A stretch of 64,000 nucleotides of DNA from Corallochytrium limacisporum Hawaii (Eukaryota > Protista > Pluriformea). A model generated the notes under the pieces. It had not been told where the DNA came from. It did no database searches and saw only the letters and a program-made list of their open reading frames with translations. Below are positions 45,490 through 56,100 of the stretch, piece by piece. The position numbers and the translations under genes are program-made. The stretch lies in the NCBI GenBank assembly GCA_002811645.1, contig PDIP01000110.1:10156-74155 (forward strand), written 5' to 3'. How positions within the stretch are numbered: position 1 is the stretch's first letter; each line of letters starts with the position of its first letter.

Positions 45490-46821
45490 TCAGGCCTGCT
45501 CGATGGCTTCGCAGATCTTATGCTCCACCAGCCAGTCGCGGTCCTGGCCCCAAGTGTGCCAGTCGTTGACCTGGAAAGATGGAACGCCCCAGAGGTTGAG
45601 CTCATTGAAGAGGATTTGACGGTTCCGCTCTGTAAGCTCATCTGCTTCAGAGTGATCTCCTTTGAGGAGCTCGGCTACTTTGTCAGTATCTAGCCCGATA
45701 TCCTTAGCGATCTGCAGAATGTTGCTATCCTTGCCCATATCAATGCCTTCCGACCAACTGCGTTTGTTGAAGAGCCAGATGAAGTCGCTGCCTTTACCTT
45801 GTGACCGAGCATACGGGTACACCTTCAGTCCGTTCTGGACGCCACCACCACGGATGGGATCACAAATGAATCCGAATGGAATTCCAATGCTCCGAGCGCG
45901 ACGGGCAGTATCCCGGGCAATGTACATTCGCTTGACATCCGGTACCGGCAGCCCACGGAGAACCATAGGCTTCACGAGATGGAAGTTAAAGTTGATGCGG
46001 TCGTCCTTCTCCCACCTTTGAATATCCGGCATTGCCAGGTAGCTGTATGGACTGCGGATCGAGTAAAATACGGCAACCTTGGGTTTCTTCTTGACTGACG
46101 TCTTGGTCACCTTGTCCAACGTCTTGTTTCCTTTTAGATTCAAAATGTGCGACCCCTTGTGACTGGCGTCTTTAAGTATACCGAGATCCTGCAGGCGATC
46201 TTCGAGGAAGTACAAACGATCAATGCCCCAGTACCACTCACCTTGATAGTAGAGCATGCCACTGAGGTAGTGACCTGTGCTATCCCTTTCCTTCGCATTG
46301 TCATCAAGGACCTTAAGTGCATCGGCATCAGTCACTTCGGAAGGGGCCTTCGACTTCAGGGTGTTCTCGTCACCTGCCCACAGAGCCTTGGCAGCATCCA
46401 AGAAACCATCTAGAGCCTGCTCATTATCGGCCTTGGCAGCAGCCACAGCAATTCTTATCGCCAGATCAAGCTGTGTCTGTGACGGTTGCTTACCGGGATC
46501 ATTGAATTGCAAGCCATAGAACGGTGCAATGTCAGCACAATCGCGGCGGTTATGAACATCCAGCTTTTCAGCCTCTTGTGCAGCCCACGGTGCTGGAGGA
46601 GGCACGACGCGAATATGCAGTTTCGATTTGTAACGCCTCGTGAACTCCTTCAATGACTGTGCGAGCAAATAGGAATGCGCATCATCAAGCTGTAGGTACG
46701 CATACACGTTGTGCTCGCTGAAAGTTCCCATGCGCACCAACTCTCTTGCGGATCGAAAAGTATTCTGTAAGGTCTCTCCCAAGAGAATCCTTACGAAGTA
46801 AGGTGCAATTGCTTGCGACAT
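45490..46821 (-). CDS. Tandem DsbA-like / HCCA-isomerase (GST-kappa) protein, bacterial type
   Basis: Two thioredoxin-like modules: 'YLQLDDAHSYL..GHYLSGMLYYQGEWYWGIDRL' and 'FYSIRSPYSYL..PMVLRGLPVP..LWGVPSF..WGQDR'. First ATG at 46821. Confidence 0.9.
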   Translation of the reverse strand: MSQAIAPYFVRILLGETLQNTFRSARELVRMGTFSEHNVYAYLQLDDAHSYLLAQSLKEFTRRYKSKLHIRVVPPPAPWAAQEAEKLDVHNRRDCADIAPFYGLQFNDPGKQPSQTQLDLAIRIAVAAAKADNEQALDGFLDAAKALWAGDENTLKSKAPSEVTDADALKVLDDNAKERDSTGHYLSGMLYYQGEWYWGIDRLYFLEDRLQDLGILKDASHKGSHILNLKGNKTLDKVTKTSVKKKPKVAVFYSIRSPYSYLAMPDIQRWEKDDRINFNFHLVKPMVLRGLPVPDVKRMYIARDTARRARSIGIPFGFICDPIRGGGVQNGLKVYPYARSQGKGSDFIWLFNKRSWSEGIDMGKDSNILQIAKDIGLDTDKVAELLKGDHSEADELTERNRQILFNELNLWGVPSFQVNDWHTWGQDRDWLVEHKICEAIEQA

Positions 46822-47742
46822 GGTGTATTGATTTTCACTTTGGTTCAACTCCTACCGGTCTTGATCGGCATTGTCACAGCGCATCAGTGGCCTTATGCTT
46901 GTACCTGAGCGCAGAATGGTACGCTTTACTACTCGTGAAATATGTAGTACCCATCTAGCCGAGGACAGGATCGTGAACTGATTTGGAGGTCACAAGCCAG
47001 CTCTACCCCCCCCCTTGCCTGCGCAAAGGTTGAGACCGTCCACCCTATAGTAAAATTATGGACTAGTTGTCGTATTCGATCCCACAATGAAATGGCGTGA
47101 GTCTGCGAACACTTTCGATCTATCTTCCCTTGCAGTGAGCTGATCCGCAGATGCATTGGTAGGTTGATGACTGTCCATTGTTCCATTGCGAAGCTATAAA
47201 TACACTCAGGCTTTTTAGATTTGCGAGTCATAATGAAGACCCCCTTCGCTGTCGGTCGGCCCTCCCCCGTTTCCTTTCTGCCGGGGGGGGGGGCTTTGCG
47301 AATCATCTTCCAGTTCGTACAATAACCGACTGAAATGATTTATTTTGATTTGATTAATTTAAGTATGGGAATGGACTTGCTGTTGGGATTGATTCGTTAA
47401 AGAATCGAACCGTCCGAACCCAGGGCAAGACAAAGTGGCATCCGACCCCGCAGTACAGCGTGTGGAGACCTTGTGGGATTTGGCGCGACAGGTTGGAAAC
47501 TGTGCGCCATAGATGAGATCCTGAGGCCCACCACAAAGAGGGCTAGACCACATTCCTATCTGGAGTACGACCTTCCTGTGGGCTGGAAGCGGTACACAAA
47601 GGCAGGTATTTTTGTGCGATGCCGGTGTCAACCATGACTGTAGCCCTCAAACTTTTGCTCGCCGCACCACAGATTGGCATTCCTCACGAAACATAATGTG
47701 GATTCATTTTGCTTTAATCAACAAGGAATCCAAACTGAAACG

Positions 47743-49513
47743 ATGACAAGCATAACCGGTACGGCTGAAGAGGTATTCTCTGCTTTGCAATTATGGCATT
47801 TGCAGCAGATTGCCATTCGTGATGGCAAAATCCAGGCCTTGCGAAAGCAGGTTCAGGATCAGAACAGTGAGATTGCGGTGTTGCAGGCCCAGCTACGTGA
47901 CATCAAGGATCAACGGGACACTGCCATTCGAGCAGCAGAGCGAGCAAAGCGTAGCCAAGCCAGATACCGGGCATTCAAAGAAGCTGTCGTCAATGCTTTC
48001 CCAGATTCTAGTCGCAGTCCGTCACCGGAAGGTCGCGCTGGCAATAGATCCACTAACAGCATGAGTAGCAGTGGCCGTTCACCACAGTCGAAGGTGAAAC
48101 CGCAGGATCTTCCGCCGCCGCCTCCTCCAGCTGGTGCAGGGGATTCATTCTATGGGCGATCGGCCACTCCAATTCTCGGAGTGTCGGTCAGCGGTGGCGC
48201 CGCTGCTCTGAATTCGACCAGCAGCAGCGCTCGGAGGGTTTGGTCATCACCAGCACCGCCGACCGTACCACCACCACCACCACCAGCAACCGTGACCGCA
48301 AGGGATGCGAGTTGGTCCATCGAATCTGGGCGAATGGACACATCAGGTGCCTCTCCCACGAGAGCGAAAGGTAAGTAACTGTTTCTGCACTTTGGGATCT
48401 ATCGTCATATCTACCCCTCCAACAGGGCCTGTTTGCATTGGGGAAGAAATTTCATATACGGAACATTTTGTATTCAATCCCCAGTGGGTGAAATTGTGCT
48501 GGGGAGCGATTCGGAGAATCAAAGGTCGAAGGTACCTCTGACCTGTTTGAAGCGCTTTGCTTCACGCTAGCTGTCAGTGTTGATGTCTGGGGGATTGTGT
48601 ACAACTGAGAGGTTTAACACAGTACATTACGCTGTGATAATTGGAAATGGAAACCAAACCTGTCCACAGTCCTTGCTCCCCCCCGCGGGGCCCCCGGAGG
48701 GGAGGGGAAGGGAGGGGGGGTAAGAGCACGGTACAAGGGATACGTGAGGTGACATACCTATACGCAGTCGGGACGGAGTAGGCGACGAACAAGACCCACC
48801 GCACCATATACATCCTTGGTATCTTTACCGCTTGGTCGGTACCACATGCCCGAAGTCTGCGTCTGGGTGTCTACGTGTGCCATTCCGAGACCGCAAGGAA
48901 ATACCTGCCATCAACTGCCTGTGAGAGCTCGGTGCAAGTGAACGCAGCTCGCACGTAGTGAAATTTGACGAGCGATGGAGAATTGGGAGGAAGTCGAGAA
49001 AAAATAGGCCCGGGTGATGTGTCACACACACACAAACGAGTACGACACACAACAACCAGACAACCCACCAGCATCAGCCCGCAGTACCTTCCGAATACTG
49101 TACTCCCGAGAGATCGATGTGGGGCATTCGATTGAAGGTGGCGGTTGCAAATTTGTGTGTGATGTCGAACCATCCGGTTGTTTTGCCTTTCAATTTGTAG
49201 CCGCTACGGTCCCCCTTACTTTTCCCTTGGCAAAGAGAGCTAAGAGATGTGGAACCGCGTGCCACACGGACCCACTGCTGCCAGGCATTTCACCACAGTC
49301 AGACTTCAGAGACCAATTCCGGACTAGGGAGAGAAAAGGGTCCCTTATCTCGTAGAGGACAAAAAGAGAAAGAAATGTGTGATGGGACGAAAAGCGTAGT
49401 TTTTCCCCAGCACATCTGTGAGTTCATATGTTGGTATGGTAGTGTCCGTGCGACATAGCATCCTGAGACGAGCTGAAGCATCTCTCGGTGGGTGACGACC
49501 ATATCCACCCGGG

Positions 49514-49546
<33 letters not shown>

Positions 49547-51192
49547 GATTCACGAAAATCACTTTTGGGCGTGTGGATTGTGGGGTTACGAAAATCCATG
49601 GGAGCTCAAAACACACCGAGGCATAGGAAGTGCCCCACATGTGGCCCTTCATCCTTTGCTTCCTCTTTCCCTATTTATTGTTTTGTTTCCCCGTCCCTTC
49701 CACACCGCTACTGGATTGGCGGCCGTCCAGGGGTTTTTCTCCCTCTCCCCTTGCGAACCGGGCCAAAAGAATCCACTGTTGTCGCTTGGAGCCGAGGGAG
49801 AGAGGGGGTGTCACCCGGGCTTAGTGGAAAAATCACAGAAGGGCCACGTCTGAGTAATTTGCTTTCGTATCTTTGACTTGGCGCTGACGCACGCAAGACC
49901 CGGGTTTTTGAACCTCCCACCGGTCCTCGGTTCAAGTTCGTTGCGGTGTTGGGCTGCGCGGAGGGGCACAGCTTGTATAGCAATGGGCATGAATTCCTCC
50001 GGTATACGGTATACTTGCCCTCAGGCACCCAGTTAAGGCGGACTCCAAGCACCAGAGAGATTGACTGATCGGCTTGGCGGCGCGGAATAGCGGCCGGGTG
50101 GGGAAGGGGGGGTATGGGGTTGGTTGGGTGGCAGTACTCTGACCAGACGGAACCGCCACACACATACAACGAGAGATGGAGCGGAGAGCGCACAAGGGAC
50201 GACGAATAAGACGACTGACCGCGTTTCATCCATCGCTACTCTCGAAGTCTGGTGTGCATATGTTCCCCCACCCTTTTTTTTGTACCACGTCCGATTTAGA
50301 TTTTTTTGTGCATTGTCAGTGTGTCTCCTCGTCCGGCCCTGCTCTCTTTGGGTGTGGGTAGGAGAGGATGAGGTGAGAGTTTCAGGCTTTTCAGTCCATA
50401 GCAGCAGCACCAGCGAAAAAGCAAGGAAGCTCCACACAAGAAAGAAAGGGCAGGGTGCAGCGCTCCCTTTCCCCCCCTCCCCTTCTCTTCTTCTTGTCCG
50501 GTCCCCCTCTGTCTCACTCGCCCCTGCAAGTGCGAGAAACCGCCAATACTGAAATTATGGAAATTGGCGAGTGAATTTTTCTCTCGCTCTTGTCTGTCGT
50601 GTCTATCCCGGCCTGTGTATCCCGGGGAGGGAGGAAGGGGCTGCTAGGACAGAGCGGTTCAGAGCCGGCGGTCTAATAGGTCCTATTTGCGATGTGCGGT
50701 AATTGATGTATTGATGATAGGTCTCTTTATTCTTTTCTCGCGAATTCTGATATCTAACTAGTTGTAATCTTCGAATCTTTTTTATATATTTACAAGGAAT
50801 GAAACGTGCATCGTTCGAACCGAAAGAATTCTTCAGGTCGGCCCACTCGGTGCTGTCTAAGGAAAAGGTAAGTTTTTTCCAATTACTCGTGCTGGACAGG
50901 AATACTGGGAAAGGGGGAAGCAAGGGAGCGTCTTTATGGTGAATCCATTGTTTTCACACTCTCACGAACATGAGATTTCAGGAAGGATTTGCTAACTTAT
51001 GTATGTTTTTATTATCTTTACAACTAAATCTTACAGTGGGAACAACTTTTGTCCATCATTAAGCAGCTTAATCACAACAAAATCAGTGGAGATGAGGCGA
51101 TCGAGGAAGCAGCACTACTTTTTGGACCAGATGACAAGGAGCTCGTGATCGACTTCTCCGTCCTCGTCGAACAACGCAAACAAACTGTGTGA
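47743..51192 (+). CDS. At4g15545/NAIP-like coiled-coil protein, spliced: exons 47743-48370, 50797-50867, 51037-51192 (284 aa)
   Basis: Exon 1 is coiled coil '..RYRAFKEAVVNAF' plus Ser/Pro linker; exons 2-3 join in frame to give 'PKEFFRSAHSVLSKEK|WEQLLSIIKQLNHNKISGDEAIEEAALLFGPDDKELVIDFSVLV', matching the family C-terminal domain pattern GKEFF..LS.E.F..FL..IK.LN..A..IFG.DN..L. Total 855 nt, divisible by 3. Confidence 0.85.
48371..50796 (+). other. Spliceosomal intron 1 (2,426 nt, phase 1)
   Basis: AAAG|GTAAGT donor; CTAAC branch point 50754-50758; T-rich tract; ACAAG| acceptor; splicing restores frame (GGA ATG AAA). Confidence 0.78.
49515..49544. repeat. (CA)n microsatellite within the long intron
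   Basis: Seen directly. Confidence 0.93.
50868..51036 (+). other. Spliceosomal intron 2 (169 nt, phase 0)
   Basis: AAG|GTAAGT donor; GCTAAC 50991-50996; TTACAG| acceptor; the join falls mid-domain without a gap. Confidence 0.9.
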
Positions 51193-51348
51193 AACTGAAA
51201 CAGGACATTCAATAACAATGACAACGCGCGTATAAGTCATGCAAAGCGAGTGTTTTGTTTATGTGTTTTGGTAAAATGATGTTACTACAGATGCGGTTCT
51301 TTTCAAATAATTTGCTATGTGGACAAGATTAGTAGAAAGACTTCGAGT

Positions 51349-52407
51349 TCATGATTGTCCACTAAGTTTCCGCCGCTTAGAGCGTCCAGAGTTGTCACTA
51401 CCCTGAGAAGCCTTGTCCTCTTCTTCCTCGTCGTGGTCTTCGTTCTCGTTCTTTTCGGGAGTGCCTTCGGCGCTGTCATCCTTGGCCTTTGACTTCTCAC
51501 GCTCGCGTTTCCGGCGTGCCTGTTCGCGCTTCTTGTCGCCCAGGGTACGTTTCAGCAAGTCTTCTAGACCACGAGTAGTGTCGGTCTGTTTCTGCTTTTC
51601 ACGTTCTGCCTCAGCAATCTTGCGCTTACAGGTTTCCTGCAGAAGCTCCATCTGCTTCTTTGACTCCTCCAGCAAATTGGTAAGTTCTTCAATGGTGTCC
51701 TTTGCTGATGTGTCCTCGTCGTCTAGCGAGTTCTTCTTGTCCAATTGTTCCTGCAGTGAGGAAATGGTAACTTCATAAAGTTTCATCTTGTCTTTTTGGG
51801 TTTCATTCTTTTCTTCGCTGTAAGTCAGGTCCTCTTCGACTCGAGCCAATTCCTTTTCCAAGCGCTTAACAGTCTTGAGGGCTCGACGCGTTTCGTCTTC
51901 GCGCTTGTCGCGTTCTCTCTCGACGTTGGCAATGTCCTCAGCGGAACTCTTGTATTGCCTTTCAATGGCCAAAAAGTTTTGAGTAGTATGTTCAAGCCGC
52001 ATACGGAGGTCATTTACCTCACGACTATGTTCATTCTTCATGACCTCAATGTCTTGCTGCAGGCGATTGATAACCGCCTCCAATTCTTCTTCACGTTCAC
52101 TGTTGCCCTTTTGCATGGGCGGAGGTGGTGGTGGACCACGGTTTGGATCGTAACCGTGACCAGGCGGTGGAGCAGAGTAGCGGTAGTCCTGCTCGTTCTT
52201 GCCGTAGGAGCCCTGGGGTGGAGGAGGACCCTGGGGTGGAGCACCGTAGTGGTGCGGTGGAGGCATGTAGTGAGCAGGAGGAGGATGGCCCTTGTCACCA
52301 TGGTCTCCGTGCTGAGGTGGAGGTCCCCAATAGCCACTGCCGTGGGGTCCTGGGCCACCATGAGGTCTCATCATATTTGGTGGCGAGTGGCGGTAGTCCA
52401 TTGCCAT
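51349..52407 (-). CDS. Uncharacterised protein: Pro/His/Gly/Tyr low-complexity N-terminus, long coiled coil, basic NLS-like C-terminus
   Basis: 352-aa ATG ORF with heptad periodicity; ends 'RSKRRKLSGQS'. Confidence 0.85.
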   Translation of the reverse strand: MAMDYRHSPPNMMRPHGGPGPHGSGYWGPPPQHGDHGDKGHPPPAHYMPPPHHYGAPPQGPPPPQGSYGKNEQDYRYSAPPPGHGYDPNRGPPPPPPMQKGNSEREEELEAVINRLQQDIEVMKNEHSREVNDLRMRLEHTTQNFLAIERQYKSSAEDIANVERERDKREDETRRALKTVKRLEKELARVEEDLTYSEEKNETQKDKMKLYEVTISSLQEQLDKKNSLDDEDTSAKDTIEELTNLLEESKKQMELLQETCKRKIAEAEREKQKQTDTTRGLEDLLKRTLGDKKREQARRKREREKSKAKDDSAEGTPEKNENEDHDEEEEDKASQGSDNSGRSKRRKLSGQS

Positions 52408-52896
52408 TTGGCAGTACGTAGGTTAGTTGGTCTTTCTTGGTGGAGTGCTTAAGCCCCCACAAAAACTTTGCCTTTTGGTGGGCTTCTTGTAGCCTTTCAA
52501 AAGCCTACTGATTCTTTTCCAAGTCGGTAAAAGTACTTGGCAACACTCAATGGCTCTCTCTGAATTCGTGAGTACTCTTAGATTCACTTTTCGCAGATTG
52601 TAAGCCAACCAACTGTGGTCTCACAGTTGATGCAATTACCTGGAATTTAAGAAAAAATGAAATTCATGAATTCGAATACCTTTACTATTTACAATCTCTA
52701 GAGCAACTCTAAACTGCAGCTAAACACATCACAGATGTCACCAAAGCATTCCTGAGATCCTAAGCAATCGCGACACGTACTTTTTACAATCCAGACGCGA
52801 CGTTTACGGTGCGCTGGTGTGGTCCTTCAAACGACCTTTTGTCTTTGCCAAAATGCTCCCCTCTGAGGGACTTGTGCCTCCCCTTCACTCCCCCCC

Positions 52897-53116: not shown

Positions 53117-56100
53117 CCGATCTTCCCCCCGCGGCAGACTCCCTCCACCTTTACGGCCCTTGCCTCCCCCCCCCACTCTTCGTTTGCGGCCACCACTTTC
53201 GATTCTCCCGGCCTTTTCTCTCCCTGTGCTCTGCGCCTCCGCGACCTCCACCCTTGGGTGCCATCTGCAGGTGTTTCTCTCAACGCGAAACTTTGGTTCG
53301 GACTTTTCCCTTCCCCCCCCCCTCCCCTCCCCTCTCCCGACTCAGTGCCAATGCCTCCCTTTTTTGTGTGTTTGCTGTCTCGTCCCCTCCTCTCCCCTCC
53401 CAGACTCCTCGCCCCCACCTCTCCCACCTCTCCTCATCCCTTTTTTTTCTACTCCTCGTCTCTTCCCTATGAACTCACTTTCTTGAAAAGCCGCCTACGG
53501 ACCCCAGCGTCCCACCGCAACCCTGCTGCTGCTCCATCCACCCTCGTCGACACCTTGCCTTCCAATTTTTTTGCTTGCTCGCTGCTTTTCGCTCCCCAAC
53601 ATTTCTCCTCCCTCACGTTTTTCTGAGTCCTCTCCGTGTCTGTATCAAATCGTGAACGTTGTCCACCATTCCTTCTCCCCTCTCCGAGCACAGTCAGTCA
53701 GGGCCGGGTAGCACAGAATAGAAGTATTTTTTTTCTTCCTGCAGCTGGAGTTGAAAATTCTTTTCTGGGGTATTTTTTTTACATTGTGTTTCGCGCAGTT
53801 CAGGCAGGGCAGATATATACACACACACTGTCTCCACACCGTAACGGTCTGGGTGTTTTATTTGCTCCACACCCTGCCCACCTCTCTCTGTCTCTTCCCC
53901 CACCCCCTCCCCTTCCTTCTCCCTGTTCCTCTTCTCTCCGGATCTCTCGCTTTTTCTCGCCCTTATATTTTGTAACACATTTCGGACATATGCTACATAT
54001 ACGGGTGGACATACTCGGGAGTCCATATTCGACGGCAAGCAGCGGCATCCGGCCTGTACGTAGGAGAGACGGTGACATACCGGCTCTTCTGCCGGGAAAA
54101 AGCGAGACCCAGCCAGTAACAATATGACAGGTAGGGCCGTGGGCACCACCTGTGATTTCTTTACCAGTCGGTACACTCCATTCCACTGAGTTCCAAATGG
54201 CTCGCCTGTCTTTTTTTTTTCATACTCCCTTTCAGACGGCCCAATCGTCTTTCCCTCCCACCCCCTCCCCCCAAACAAATACCAGGAGAGGCTACGCCGG
54301 GATCTATTTTCTTGCAACAACAACGAAGTAAATAGACCACCTGCCGGGCTGCGAAAGTACACATGCAAGAGCAGATACCAGCATGCTGACCAGAATAACC
54401 GGGGCAGATGGGGAGCATAAGCACTCGGGGTTCAAGCCATCAGAGCACACACCACACCACACCCAAACACCCCACACTACAACACAGTCATACTCACGAA
54501 CGCACAAAACACACACACTCACAGGTCAACCAGCAGCGTGAGTTCGGTAGATGGTTACATACATATTATTCAGAATTTGACGCAAAATGAGAGACGATCG
54601 AGACTAGAAACAAATATTGGTGCAAGGTGAAACCTTCGCCGTCTGGTTGCATATAATATACCCCCGGTATGACGCCGACTGCCCTTCTGCGAGGGTTTTA
54701 AACCCCACCTTGCCTTCGGCCCCACTTAGTCCTTCGCGCTCCATCACCACCACCCGTCGTCTTGTCGAAAGGGTTGGGTGCTGAGGACATCAAGCTGAAA
54801 AGCTATTGGGAGGTGGGGAGAGACGCGAGGGAAAAGGTTCGCGCGTGCGGTACTTAACTGTGTAGCTACTGGCTGTCGACTCTTAGTATTGCCGTAAATA
54901 CGCGGGAAGTGTTGCACGTTTGTATGGAGTTCGAAACCGACCTATGTAGACTCAGTGCACCGGGTGGGTGGAGTACGTGGAACTCTTAGACGAAGTGTTT
55001 CTGATGAATAAGAGTAAGGCGTCAACTCTAGGAGCACGGGCAAACAAGGCGCAGGCGCAGCAAGCCAATACCAAGAGTCAGTTCTCCCAGCCGGTCTTCA
55101 ATTATTCGAGAGCGGCAGAACCACGCTTGAATTTGATTCGTGTCTGACGCTTCTAGGTTTTACCTTGGGTCCCCGACTGTTGATTCTGTTCCTGCTCTGC
55201 TTCCCCGTCATCTCCTCACCATCATCAAAACGCTTCGTGGGGAAAACCCAGAAGGACAGTACCCGATTCGCTCTTTTGTGTAGCTGCGTACTGGCTATTG
55301 AAATGAGGGCATATGTTCCTGCCACCATCGGACATGTTTTCAACTACTACCACAACGACTTGCATGCATATGTCCGGGAAAAAATATGCCTCGATGACCG
55401 CTGTGACGGCAAAGGTCGGTATTATGCCAACCGGAACTATATGGTCGTTATTGGCAATGACCAAGTGTGGGGCAGCAACAGAAGGCCCTCCCTAGCATTT
55501 TTTCCTTTCCCTTCCATCTCTTGCTGCAATCGATGAATCATACCCGGACACATACCGGGACCGTAAGCTCCATTCTCTGGCTGCCCCAAACACGATTAAA
55601 GACAAAAACACAGGGTTGTAAGGAAGCAGTTTGCCATATTCTAGAAGCGAAAAAAAAAAACGAAACTCTCCTCCTGCATGAGCGCAAGCCAAAGGGTGCA
55701 ACCGACGGGACCGCCAAAACCTACGATGATCATCTGATTACCTATCTCTAAATGCATATGATGGTGATGAGCATGCTGACCAGTGACCTAAGAGCAAAGA
55801 AATCATTGTCGCATCCCATGTCGTAAGAAGGGAAATTGACAACAGACACATGTGGTAACAAATTGTGAGTTGTTGGGAAGAATTACCGTTGTGGCTAGCG
55901 GGCACTACACCACGATCACCAACGTTTGAGAGATTACACTCCGCTCGGAATGCACAGGACAAGCACTAAGGATACCTTGTAGAAACATTCATCGAACAGA
56001 ACGTGGTATTGGCATCCACAGGAAGCCAACACTGGCGAGAACAACATGTTGCAGCCTGGTCGACGACGAATTTGCAGGAAAATTCCCGTACTGATAAATC

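Follow-up and report, generated by a model that had tools for sequence, protein, structure and literature searches.

The long (5'L) introns of Saccharomyces cerevisiae, such as those of RPS17B/RP51B, RPS6B and APE2, can form zipper stems, and in RPS17B the pairing near both intron ends shortens the branch distance for spliceosome assembly (PMC2536676). Two further systems with few introns are relevant here. Yarrowia lipolytica has introns of up to 3,478 nt, retains the first intron of its multi-intron genes, and has splice-site motifs that create premature stops; a zipper stem was merely suggested there as a possibility (PMC2911113). Cyanidioschyzon and its relatives have a reduced intron set, a mean splicing efficiency of 42-50% and 5'-biased stops (10.64898/2026.05.17.725761). 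Here we analyze intron 1 of a putative NAIP/At4g15545-like gene of the unicellular holozoan Corallochytrium limacisporum Hawaii, which lies in a 64,000-nt stretch of contig PDIP01000110.1 (GCA_002811645.1, positions 10,156 to 74,155; hereafter the window, to which all coordinates refer unless a locus is named). With a probability of roughly two in three (0.68), we read it as an ordinary U2-type intron of extreme length, folded in the zipper manner of RPS17B, whose splicing is leaky.

The genome makes such an intron exceptional. The Corallochytrium annotation holds 7,535 genes and 380 introns, with a median length of 94 nt, an upper quartile of 178 nt and a total of 68,637 nt (PMC5560861). Of the ancestral intron sites surveyed, about 99.6% are gone from the lineage, which has also lost three of the four exon-junction components and most serine/arginine-rich (SR) proteins (PMC5560861). 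At 2,426 nt, intron 1 is 26 times the genome median and makes up 3.5% of all annotated intron DNA. The original prediction, made from the letters of the window alone, had presented it as an extreme survivor of wholesale intron loss among large intronless genes, and as to length and genome this is borne out; the large neighbouring genes are indeed single open reading frames (ORFs) in the window, and seven of the ten ORFs tested match database proteins exactly.

Corallochytrium shares with S. cerevisiae an intron-poor genome, a strong donor, a TACTAAC-type branch site, distinct short and long intron classes, long introns in housekeeping and ribosomal-protein genes, and complementary segments past the donor and before the branch (PMC2536676). 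However, it is a holozoan, so that the likeness is presumably convergent; its loop measures about 2.2 kb whereas the longest S. cerevisiae intron is 1,002 nt (PMC2911113), its host is not a ribosomal-protein gene, and its stem is predicted. Yarrowia is likewise of another lineage and uses another donor motif (PMC2911113). The introns of Cyanidioschyzon are short, with a mean of about 250 nt in C. merolae, and U1 is lost, whereas the second intron of the Corallochytrium gene is fully spliced. Our literature search, with most subscription journals outside its reach, turned up no work on the structure or retention of introns in Corallochytrium.

Gene structure and splicing of intron 1

Three exons on the forward strand (47743-48370, 50797-50867 and 51037-51192) join in frame into an 855-nt coding sequence for 284 aa with a single terminal stop. 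RNA evidence comes from two public runs of two studies, X1 and X2, which are probably RNA and were analysed as unstranded contigs, with levels that are rough; X2 is identical to the window, and X1, which differs at about 0.7% of intron positions, is taken as another strain. The gene has the following parts:

47668-47742 (+): 5' untranslated region (UTR); the contigs of both runs start at 47668, preceded in X1 by adapter-like letters
47743-48370 (+): exon 1, 209 codons plus one base, coding for a coiled-coil-like N-terminus (about residues 15-90) and a Ser/Pro-rich linker
48371-50796 (+): intron 1, 2,426 nt, phase 1, single copy, non-coding, with U2-type signals; junction in two runs
48371-48378 (+): donor GTAAGT, with an in-frame TAA at 48376-48378 that ends a 211-aa product upon retention
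50752-50758 (+): branch site ATCTAAC, branch A at 50757, different from the commonest TACTAAC
50794-50796 (+): acceptor AAG, where most other candidate introns of the genome (18 of 26) end in CAG
50797-50867 (+): exon 2, 71 nt, with an in-frame Met211 at 50799 and the first helix of the At4g15545_C domain
50868-51036 (+): intron 2, 169 nt, phase 0, splitting the domain; no retained form detected
51037-51192 (+): exon 3, the rest of the At4g15545_C (HHD/PAH-like) domain and the stop codon (hhalign probability 96%)
51193-51231 (+): short 3' UTR, abutting or overlapping the 3' end of the convergent neighbour; the X2 contig stops at 51231

The signals are GTAAGT, ATCTAAC and AAG for intron 1, and GTAAGT, TGCTAAC and CAG for intron 2. 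Both skips (2426 and 169 nt, GT..AG) are present in contigs of the two runs, and a single 969-nt contig of X2 carries both junctions, with all three exons at flat depth. Intron 1 is confirmed as a real U2-type spliceosomal intron, removed from RNA at these borders. The two introns that the original prediction had required, one of them described there with canonical signals, are borne out by the in-frame join and by the junctions it had proposed as a check (48370^50797 and 50867^51037), both of which are seen in both runs. Among the contig joints listed, none uses an alternative donor at 48720 or an alternative acceptor near 48570-48580. The contigs also place a sharp transcript start, probably near 47668-47669. 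A word search with exon 1 returned one protein, EukProt entry Clim_evm15s12, of 284 aa and carrying Pfam PF25972 (At4g15545_C); the 284-aa gene model is already published under this name.

The junction contigs rule out a split gene with separate transcripts for its two halves. A related idea, that a promoter nested in intron 1 drives a separate 74-aa, domain-only protein from the ATG of exon 2, could draw on Met211, which is in frame two bases past the acceptor, and on the AT-rich DNA ahead of it. We regard it as very improbable. The three exons are joined at flat depth in one X2 contig, about 50545-50793 is without cover in the listed contigs and binned depths of X2, and no X2 intron contig extends to exon 2; in X1 the intron depth drops toward exon 2 (40 to 31.6), with no depth step, and the G/C tracts once read as promoter-type lie at background density.

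Predicted pairing between the ends of intron 1

Two segments near the ends of intron 1 are predicted to pair with each other:

48394-48440 (+): predicted zipper 5' arm, beginning 24 nt into the intron
50669-50725 (+): predicted zipper 3' arm, ending 32 nt before the branch A

In the fold of the whole intron, a helix joins 48394-48433 to 50675-50725 with pair probabilities near 1 in the ensemble. When 80-nt arms are taken after the donor and before the branch, they pair at -42.3 kcal/mol, a stability matched by one of 1,000 dinucleotide shuffles (9 of 1,000 with 60-nt and 10 of 1,000 with 100-nt arms), and the merged stem of 39 bp compares with 28 bp in the best of nine shuffled introns. This stem would reduce the distance from donor to branch from 2,387 nt, far beyond the 200 nt used as zipper criterion, to 56 nt (24+32). 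At the sequence level, intron 1 therefore combines a long linear distance, a sense-strand complementarity beyond chance expectation, and the predicted return to short-intron spacing. In the second strain, X1, both arms are identical (fewer than one change would be expected there by chance), and all listed differences fall outside donor, branch, acceptor and arms, the G tract at 48692-48724 being unreadable in that run. An apparent masking of the donor by pairing with the acceptor tract, present in the fold of the bare intron, vanishes with exon context (P = 0.01).

The pairing has a z of -3.5 on the sense strand and -0.7 on the antisense strand, and 8 of its 44 pairs are G-U. Strong pairing on the sense strand only is expected of RNA pairing with G-U pairs, and not of DNA terminal repeats. 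This bears on the possibility that an old DNA transposon or miniature inverted-repeat transposable element (MITE) entered an intron of about 95 nt, the zipper being its decayed terminal inverted repeats. Removal of 48394-50725 would indeed leave a normal-sized intron, and TTT stands at both ends. However, TTT means little where the flanks are T-rich, the genome contains no further exact copy of the arm pattern, the intron itself is single-copy, and unrelated introns with unrelated sequences share its geometry. Neither strand-symmetric repeats nor further copies, the marks of such elements, were found, and we consider this origin improbable, while an insertion could be the remote source of the intron's length.

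The comparison with other introns rests on about 25 further candidates, predicted from pattern searches and fetched loci, in genes for tubulin, RPL18A, RPLP0, ATP synthase subunits, cofilin, Arf, histone H1 and similar proteins. As in yeast, they fall into two classes, of about 90-110 nt and of 220-410 nt. The short ones have a linear donor-to-branch distance with a median of 56 nt (range 47-77), which is the spacing that the stem would give to intron 1. Among the long ones, five carry significant end-to-end stems:

L009:1230-1600: predicted intron, tubulin
L010:1514-1849: predicted intron, RPL18A
L071:1457-1827: predicted intron, ATP synthase c
L083:1517-1927: predicted intron, RPLP0
L094:1515-1746: predicted intron, ATP synthase alpha/beta-family gene

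These introns (232-411 nt) are closed by their stems to 46-63 nt. For the six long introns tested, intron 1 included, the own arms have a mean z of -2.9, as against -0.23 (sd 1.09) for swapped pairs and 0.13 (sd 0.99) for the arm pairs of 113 pseudo-introns. Eight of the 11 other candidates of at least 223 nt close to 46-63 nt (P = 0.0014 versus shuffles), whereas roughly one shuffle in four closes to no more than 80 nt. No match to small nucleolar RNAs (snoRNAs) accompanies the strong stems of the introns in the tubulin, RPL18A, RPLP0 and ATP synthase genes. Other long introns of the genome therefore appear, on predicted structures, to use the same device.

Several points weigh against this interpretation. 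The stem is a prediction, compared in only two near-identical strains, and the screening of several other features preceded its discovery; folding of the whole intron gives a z of just -1.7. Of 806 G-rich noncoding windows, 28, one of them inside intron 1, equal or surpass the 3' arm as partners of the 5' arm, so that competing folds exist. The comparison introns are predictions from sequence patterns alone, and one doubtful model was left out of the six-intron arm test. Exceptions to the rule are an uncertain 401-nt model in ATG16, with no stem, and introns of 236 and 366 nt. In some introns of middle size, stems that flank snoRNA candidates could be mistaken for a zipper. Finally, contig depth, unstranded as it is, measures RNA levels poorly.

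In the mechanism that we propose, the nascent RNA would pair 48394-48440 with 50669-50725, as folding statistics suggest, and loop out about 2.2 kb, leaving 56 nt between donor and branch point. As this equals the spacing of the genome's introns of about 90-110 nt, a yeast-like, intron-definition spliceosome could assemble on it. The leakiness of splicing would plausibly come from the 2.3 kb of transcription that separate the synthesis of the 5' arm from that of the 3' arm, and from a branch (ATCTAAC) and an acceptor (AAG) that are off consensus; in the other candidate introns the base before CTAA is A or G in 20 of 26 and T in three of 26. If correct, the stem shows selection that keeps intron 1 spliceable, and not a job for the inner 2.2 kb.

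Partial retention and the intron interior

Exon 1 has a depth of 96 in X1 and 24.5 in X2. In X1 the spliced junction stands at 44.6, and two contigs, of depth 40 and 31.6, cover intron 1 from one end to the other, which corresponds to a retention of about 41-47%. Intron 1 is covered patchily in X2, mostly at 3-6 as compared with 4.5 upstream of the start, and its retention of at most 11-20% may be background. Intron 2 has zero depth in both runs by bin arithmetic that reproduces the observed depths exactly. A retained form from which the neighbouring intron has been removed, as expected of a detained or retained intron, is accordingly seen in X1 only, X2 being near background. Zero depth over intron 2 and over the intergenic stretch 46894-47087 argues against carry-over of DNA and against antisense read-through from the convergent neighbour as sources of the X1 intron cover, and we rejected both. 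Since intron 2 is fully spliced, poor splicing is not a property of the whole gene.

The retained RNA runs into the stop at 48376 and would either be decayed or yield a 211-aa coiled-coil and linker protein without the partner-binding domain. This stop is a by-product of GTAAGTAA and recurs in two of the eight other phase-1 candidate introns. In the NAIPs of Arabidopsis the coiled coil self-associates and the HHD-like domain binds partners (PMC9314129), so that the retained form, if translated, could act as a dominant negative; decay would be at least as likely an outcome.

It is conceivable, though clearly the less favoured option, that retention is regulated in addition: the zipper and a second, inner helix (or a G-quadruplex competing with it) would form a condition-dependent splice switch, setting the balance between the full-length adaptor and decayed RNA or a coiled-coil-only, dominant-negative form. 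The features concerned lie in the loop:

48687-48734 (+): G/purine tract with a G-quadruplex motif at 48699-48720, predicted partner of 50455-50505 in a second, inner long-range helix
50455-50505 (+): C/pyrimidine tract, predicted partner of 48687-48734
49515-49544 (+): CA microsatellite, no function inferred
50096-50119 (+): G tract with a G-quadruplex motif, no function inferred

Such a switch would fit the unequal retention in X1 and X2 (41-47% as against at most 11-20%) with identical donor, branch, acceptor and zipper arms, the position of intron 1 exactly between coiled coil and binding module (domain roles from NAIPs, PMC9314129), and the inner helix, whose stability is reached by 0-1 of 233 controls (top 0.5% or so). 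However, the difference may be technical, given that X1 and X2 come from different strains, studies and libraries; the inner helix is a low-complexity purine/pyrimidine pairing, and a stop made by the donor is common here. Moreover, inefficient splicing with 5'-biased stops is general in intron-poor genomes (10.64898/2026.05.17.725761), and the first intron is usually the one retained in Yarrowia (PMC2911113). Given these precedents from Yarrowia and from the reduced red algae, retention alone is no proof of regulation, and we hold the leak likelier to be a by-product than a switch. A stronger version, in which the 2.2-kb loop is a regulatory RNA module (the inner helix competing with the G-quadruplex, or an undescribed RNA) that switches splicing by life stage or stress and toggles the NAIP-like membrane adaptor between full-length and coiled-coil-only forms, seems to us rather unlikely.

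The loop might instead host an undescribed non-coding RNA, an antisense RNA or an independent transcript, which would account for both its length and its RNA cover. The X1 cover extends over the entire intron, depth in X2 rises locally near 50180-50310, and snoRNA candidates occur in other introns of the genome. We give this little credence, as the X1 intron contigs join exon 1 and exon 2 at the borders, with depths that add up (44.6 + 40 versus 96), and as intron 2 would not have zero depth if transcription ran on in antisense from the neighbour. Rfam returned no match at E <= 5 in intron 1 other than two low-complexity hits, no transfer RNA or C/D box pair was found there, and windows with a local fold at z <= -2.5 are as frequent (3.4%) as in the background (3.2%). 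A hosted known RNA, one of the options in the original prediction, finds no support here.

Three intronic snoRNA candidates were noted elsewhere in the genome: a snoZ122-like box C/D candidate, slightly below the gathering score, in a peptidase M16 gene (L012:5624-5722), a weak SNORD126-like candidate in Sas10 (L087:1503-1581), and a C/D box pair in eIF3d (L092:1556-1824). At another locus (L065; G000:C172:4600-7700), three predicted short introns of 86-92 nt lie within 3 kb, at least one of them in a phosphomannomutase gene, so that introns cluster in few genes.

The interior otherwise looks like ordinary non-coding DNA of the genome. No second copy of intron 1 exists in the 24,109,830-base assembly, and no repeat was found in it. 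The nine ORFs of at least 100 aa that lie in or overlap intron 1 all score negative on codons as candidates for a nested protein gene, and in the second strain four of them carry a frameshift and one has acquired a stop. The G/C tracts and the CA repeat are present where they had been described, but the promoter-type character once attributed to them does not set the intron apart: intron 1 has 4.1 G/C runs per kb as compared with 3.7 for intergenic sequence of the window, and coding DNA has 0.4. A scan for sigma-70 promoters is irrelevant to a eukaryote. As for the proposal of a regulatory intron, no known non-coding RNA, nested gene or nested promoter was found to support it; a regulatory use would be compatible with the non-random pairing of the ends on the sense strand and with the partial retention in one run.

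The NAIP-like host gene and its surroundings

Homology searches were made exon by exon, and the stored 284-aa entry was searched with scoring on its exon-3 part. Exon 2 matches positions 191-207 and exon 3 positions 210-253 of the At4g15545_C family profile, and the N-terminus matches the family's N-terminal coiled coil weakly (E 0.03) but in the correct position. With PF25972 on the stored protein and the exon-wise profile matches, the gene carries the domain that defines the NAIP/At4g15545 family, and its product is probably a NAIP-like adaptor composed of a coiled coil, a Ser/Pro linker and an HHD-like domain. The C-terminal domain that the join was said to complete is confirmed in exons 2 and 3; as it lies wholly within them, it is intron 2, and not intron 1, that splits it, intron 1 falling between linker and domain.

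In Arabidopsis, NAIPs use their coiled coil for self-association and their HHD-like domain for partner binding, and a role in vesicles derived from the endoplasmic reticulum is known from this plant only (PMC9314129). The Corallochytrium protein resembles NAIP1-3 (PF25972; PMC9314129) in its coiled-coil-like N-terminus, divergent SP/TP-rich middle, C-terminal HHD-like domain and similar length. It differs in that it is found in a unicellular holozoan and is divergent (32-41% identity in exon 3), and the plant partner NAI2 is Brassicaceae-specific (PMC9314129). Word, profile-library and metagenome searches yielded no intron-bearing orthologue, the homologues being transcript contigs or intronless genomic copies. 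The nearest sequences are marine transcript contigs and intronless, GC-rich, algal-like copies.

Downstream, very tight convergent ends (51193-51349) bring the NAIP-like transcript against a highly covered orphan coiled-coil gene (51349-52407, -); the two are merged in one X1 contig and lie 60 nt apart in X2. Upstream of the start, 47257-47665 has low RNA cover (3.5-4.6) in both runs, in a divergent intergenic region shared with a DsbA-like/HCCA-isomerase-type gene (45490-46821, -), which has one significant Pfam DSBA domain in its C-terminal half. In the non-coding block at 52.5-57 kb, 52550-52690 (+) and 55900-56049 (-) form strong local hairpins (z -5.2 and -6.8 in 120-nt windows, -2.8 and -2.4 in wider refolds) with no Rfam match.

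The NAIP family is on record from plants, algae and protists, and fungi and animals are reported to lack it (PMC9314129); a gene of this family is now placed in a unicellular holozoan. Should the loop of intron 1 prove to be a switch, a holozoan without most SR and exon-junction factors would regulate splicing by RNA structure alone. If the stem works, a close relative of animals would have reached the budding-yeast solution independently, holding donor and branch at a fixed distance of about 56 nt, in a version that spans over twice the length of the longest intron in S. cerevisiae. As the predicted rule is quantitative and genome-wide, the idea of a 'structural branch distance' may become testable outside yeast.

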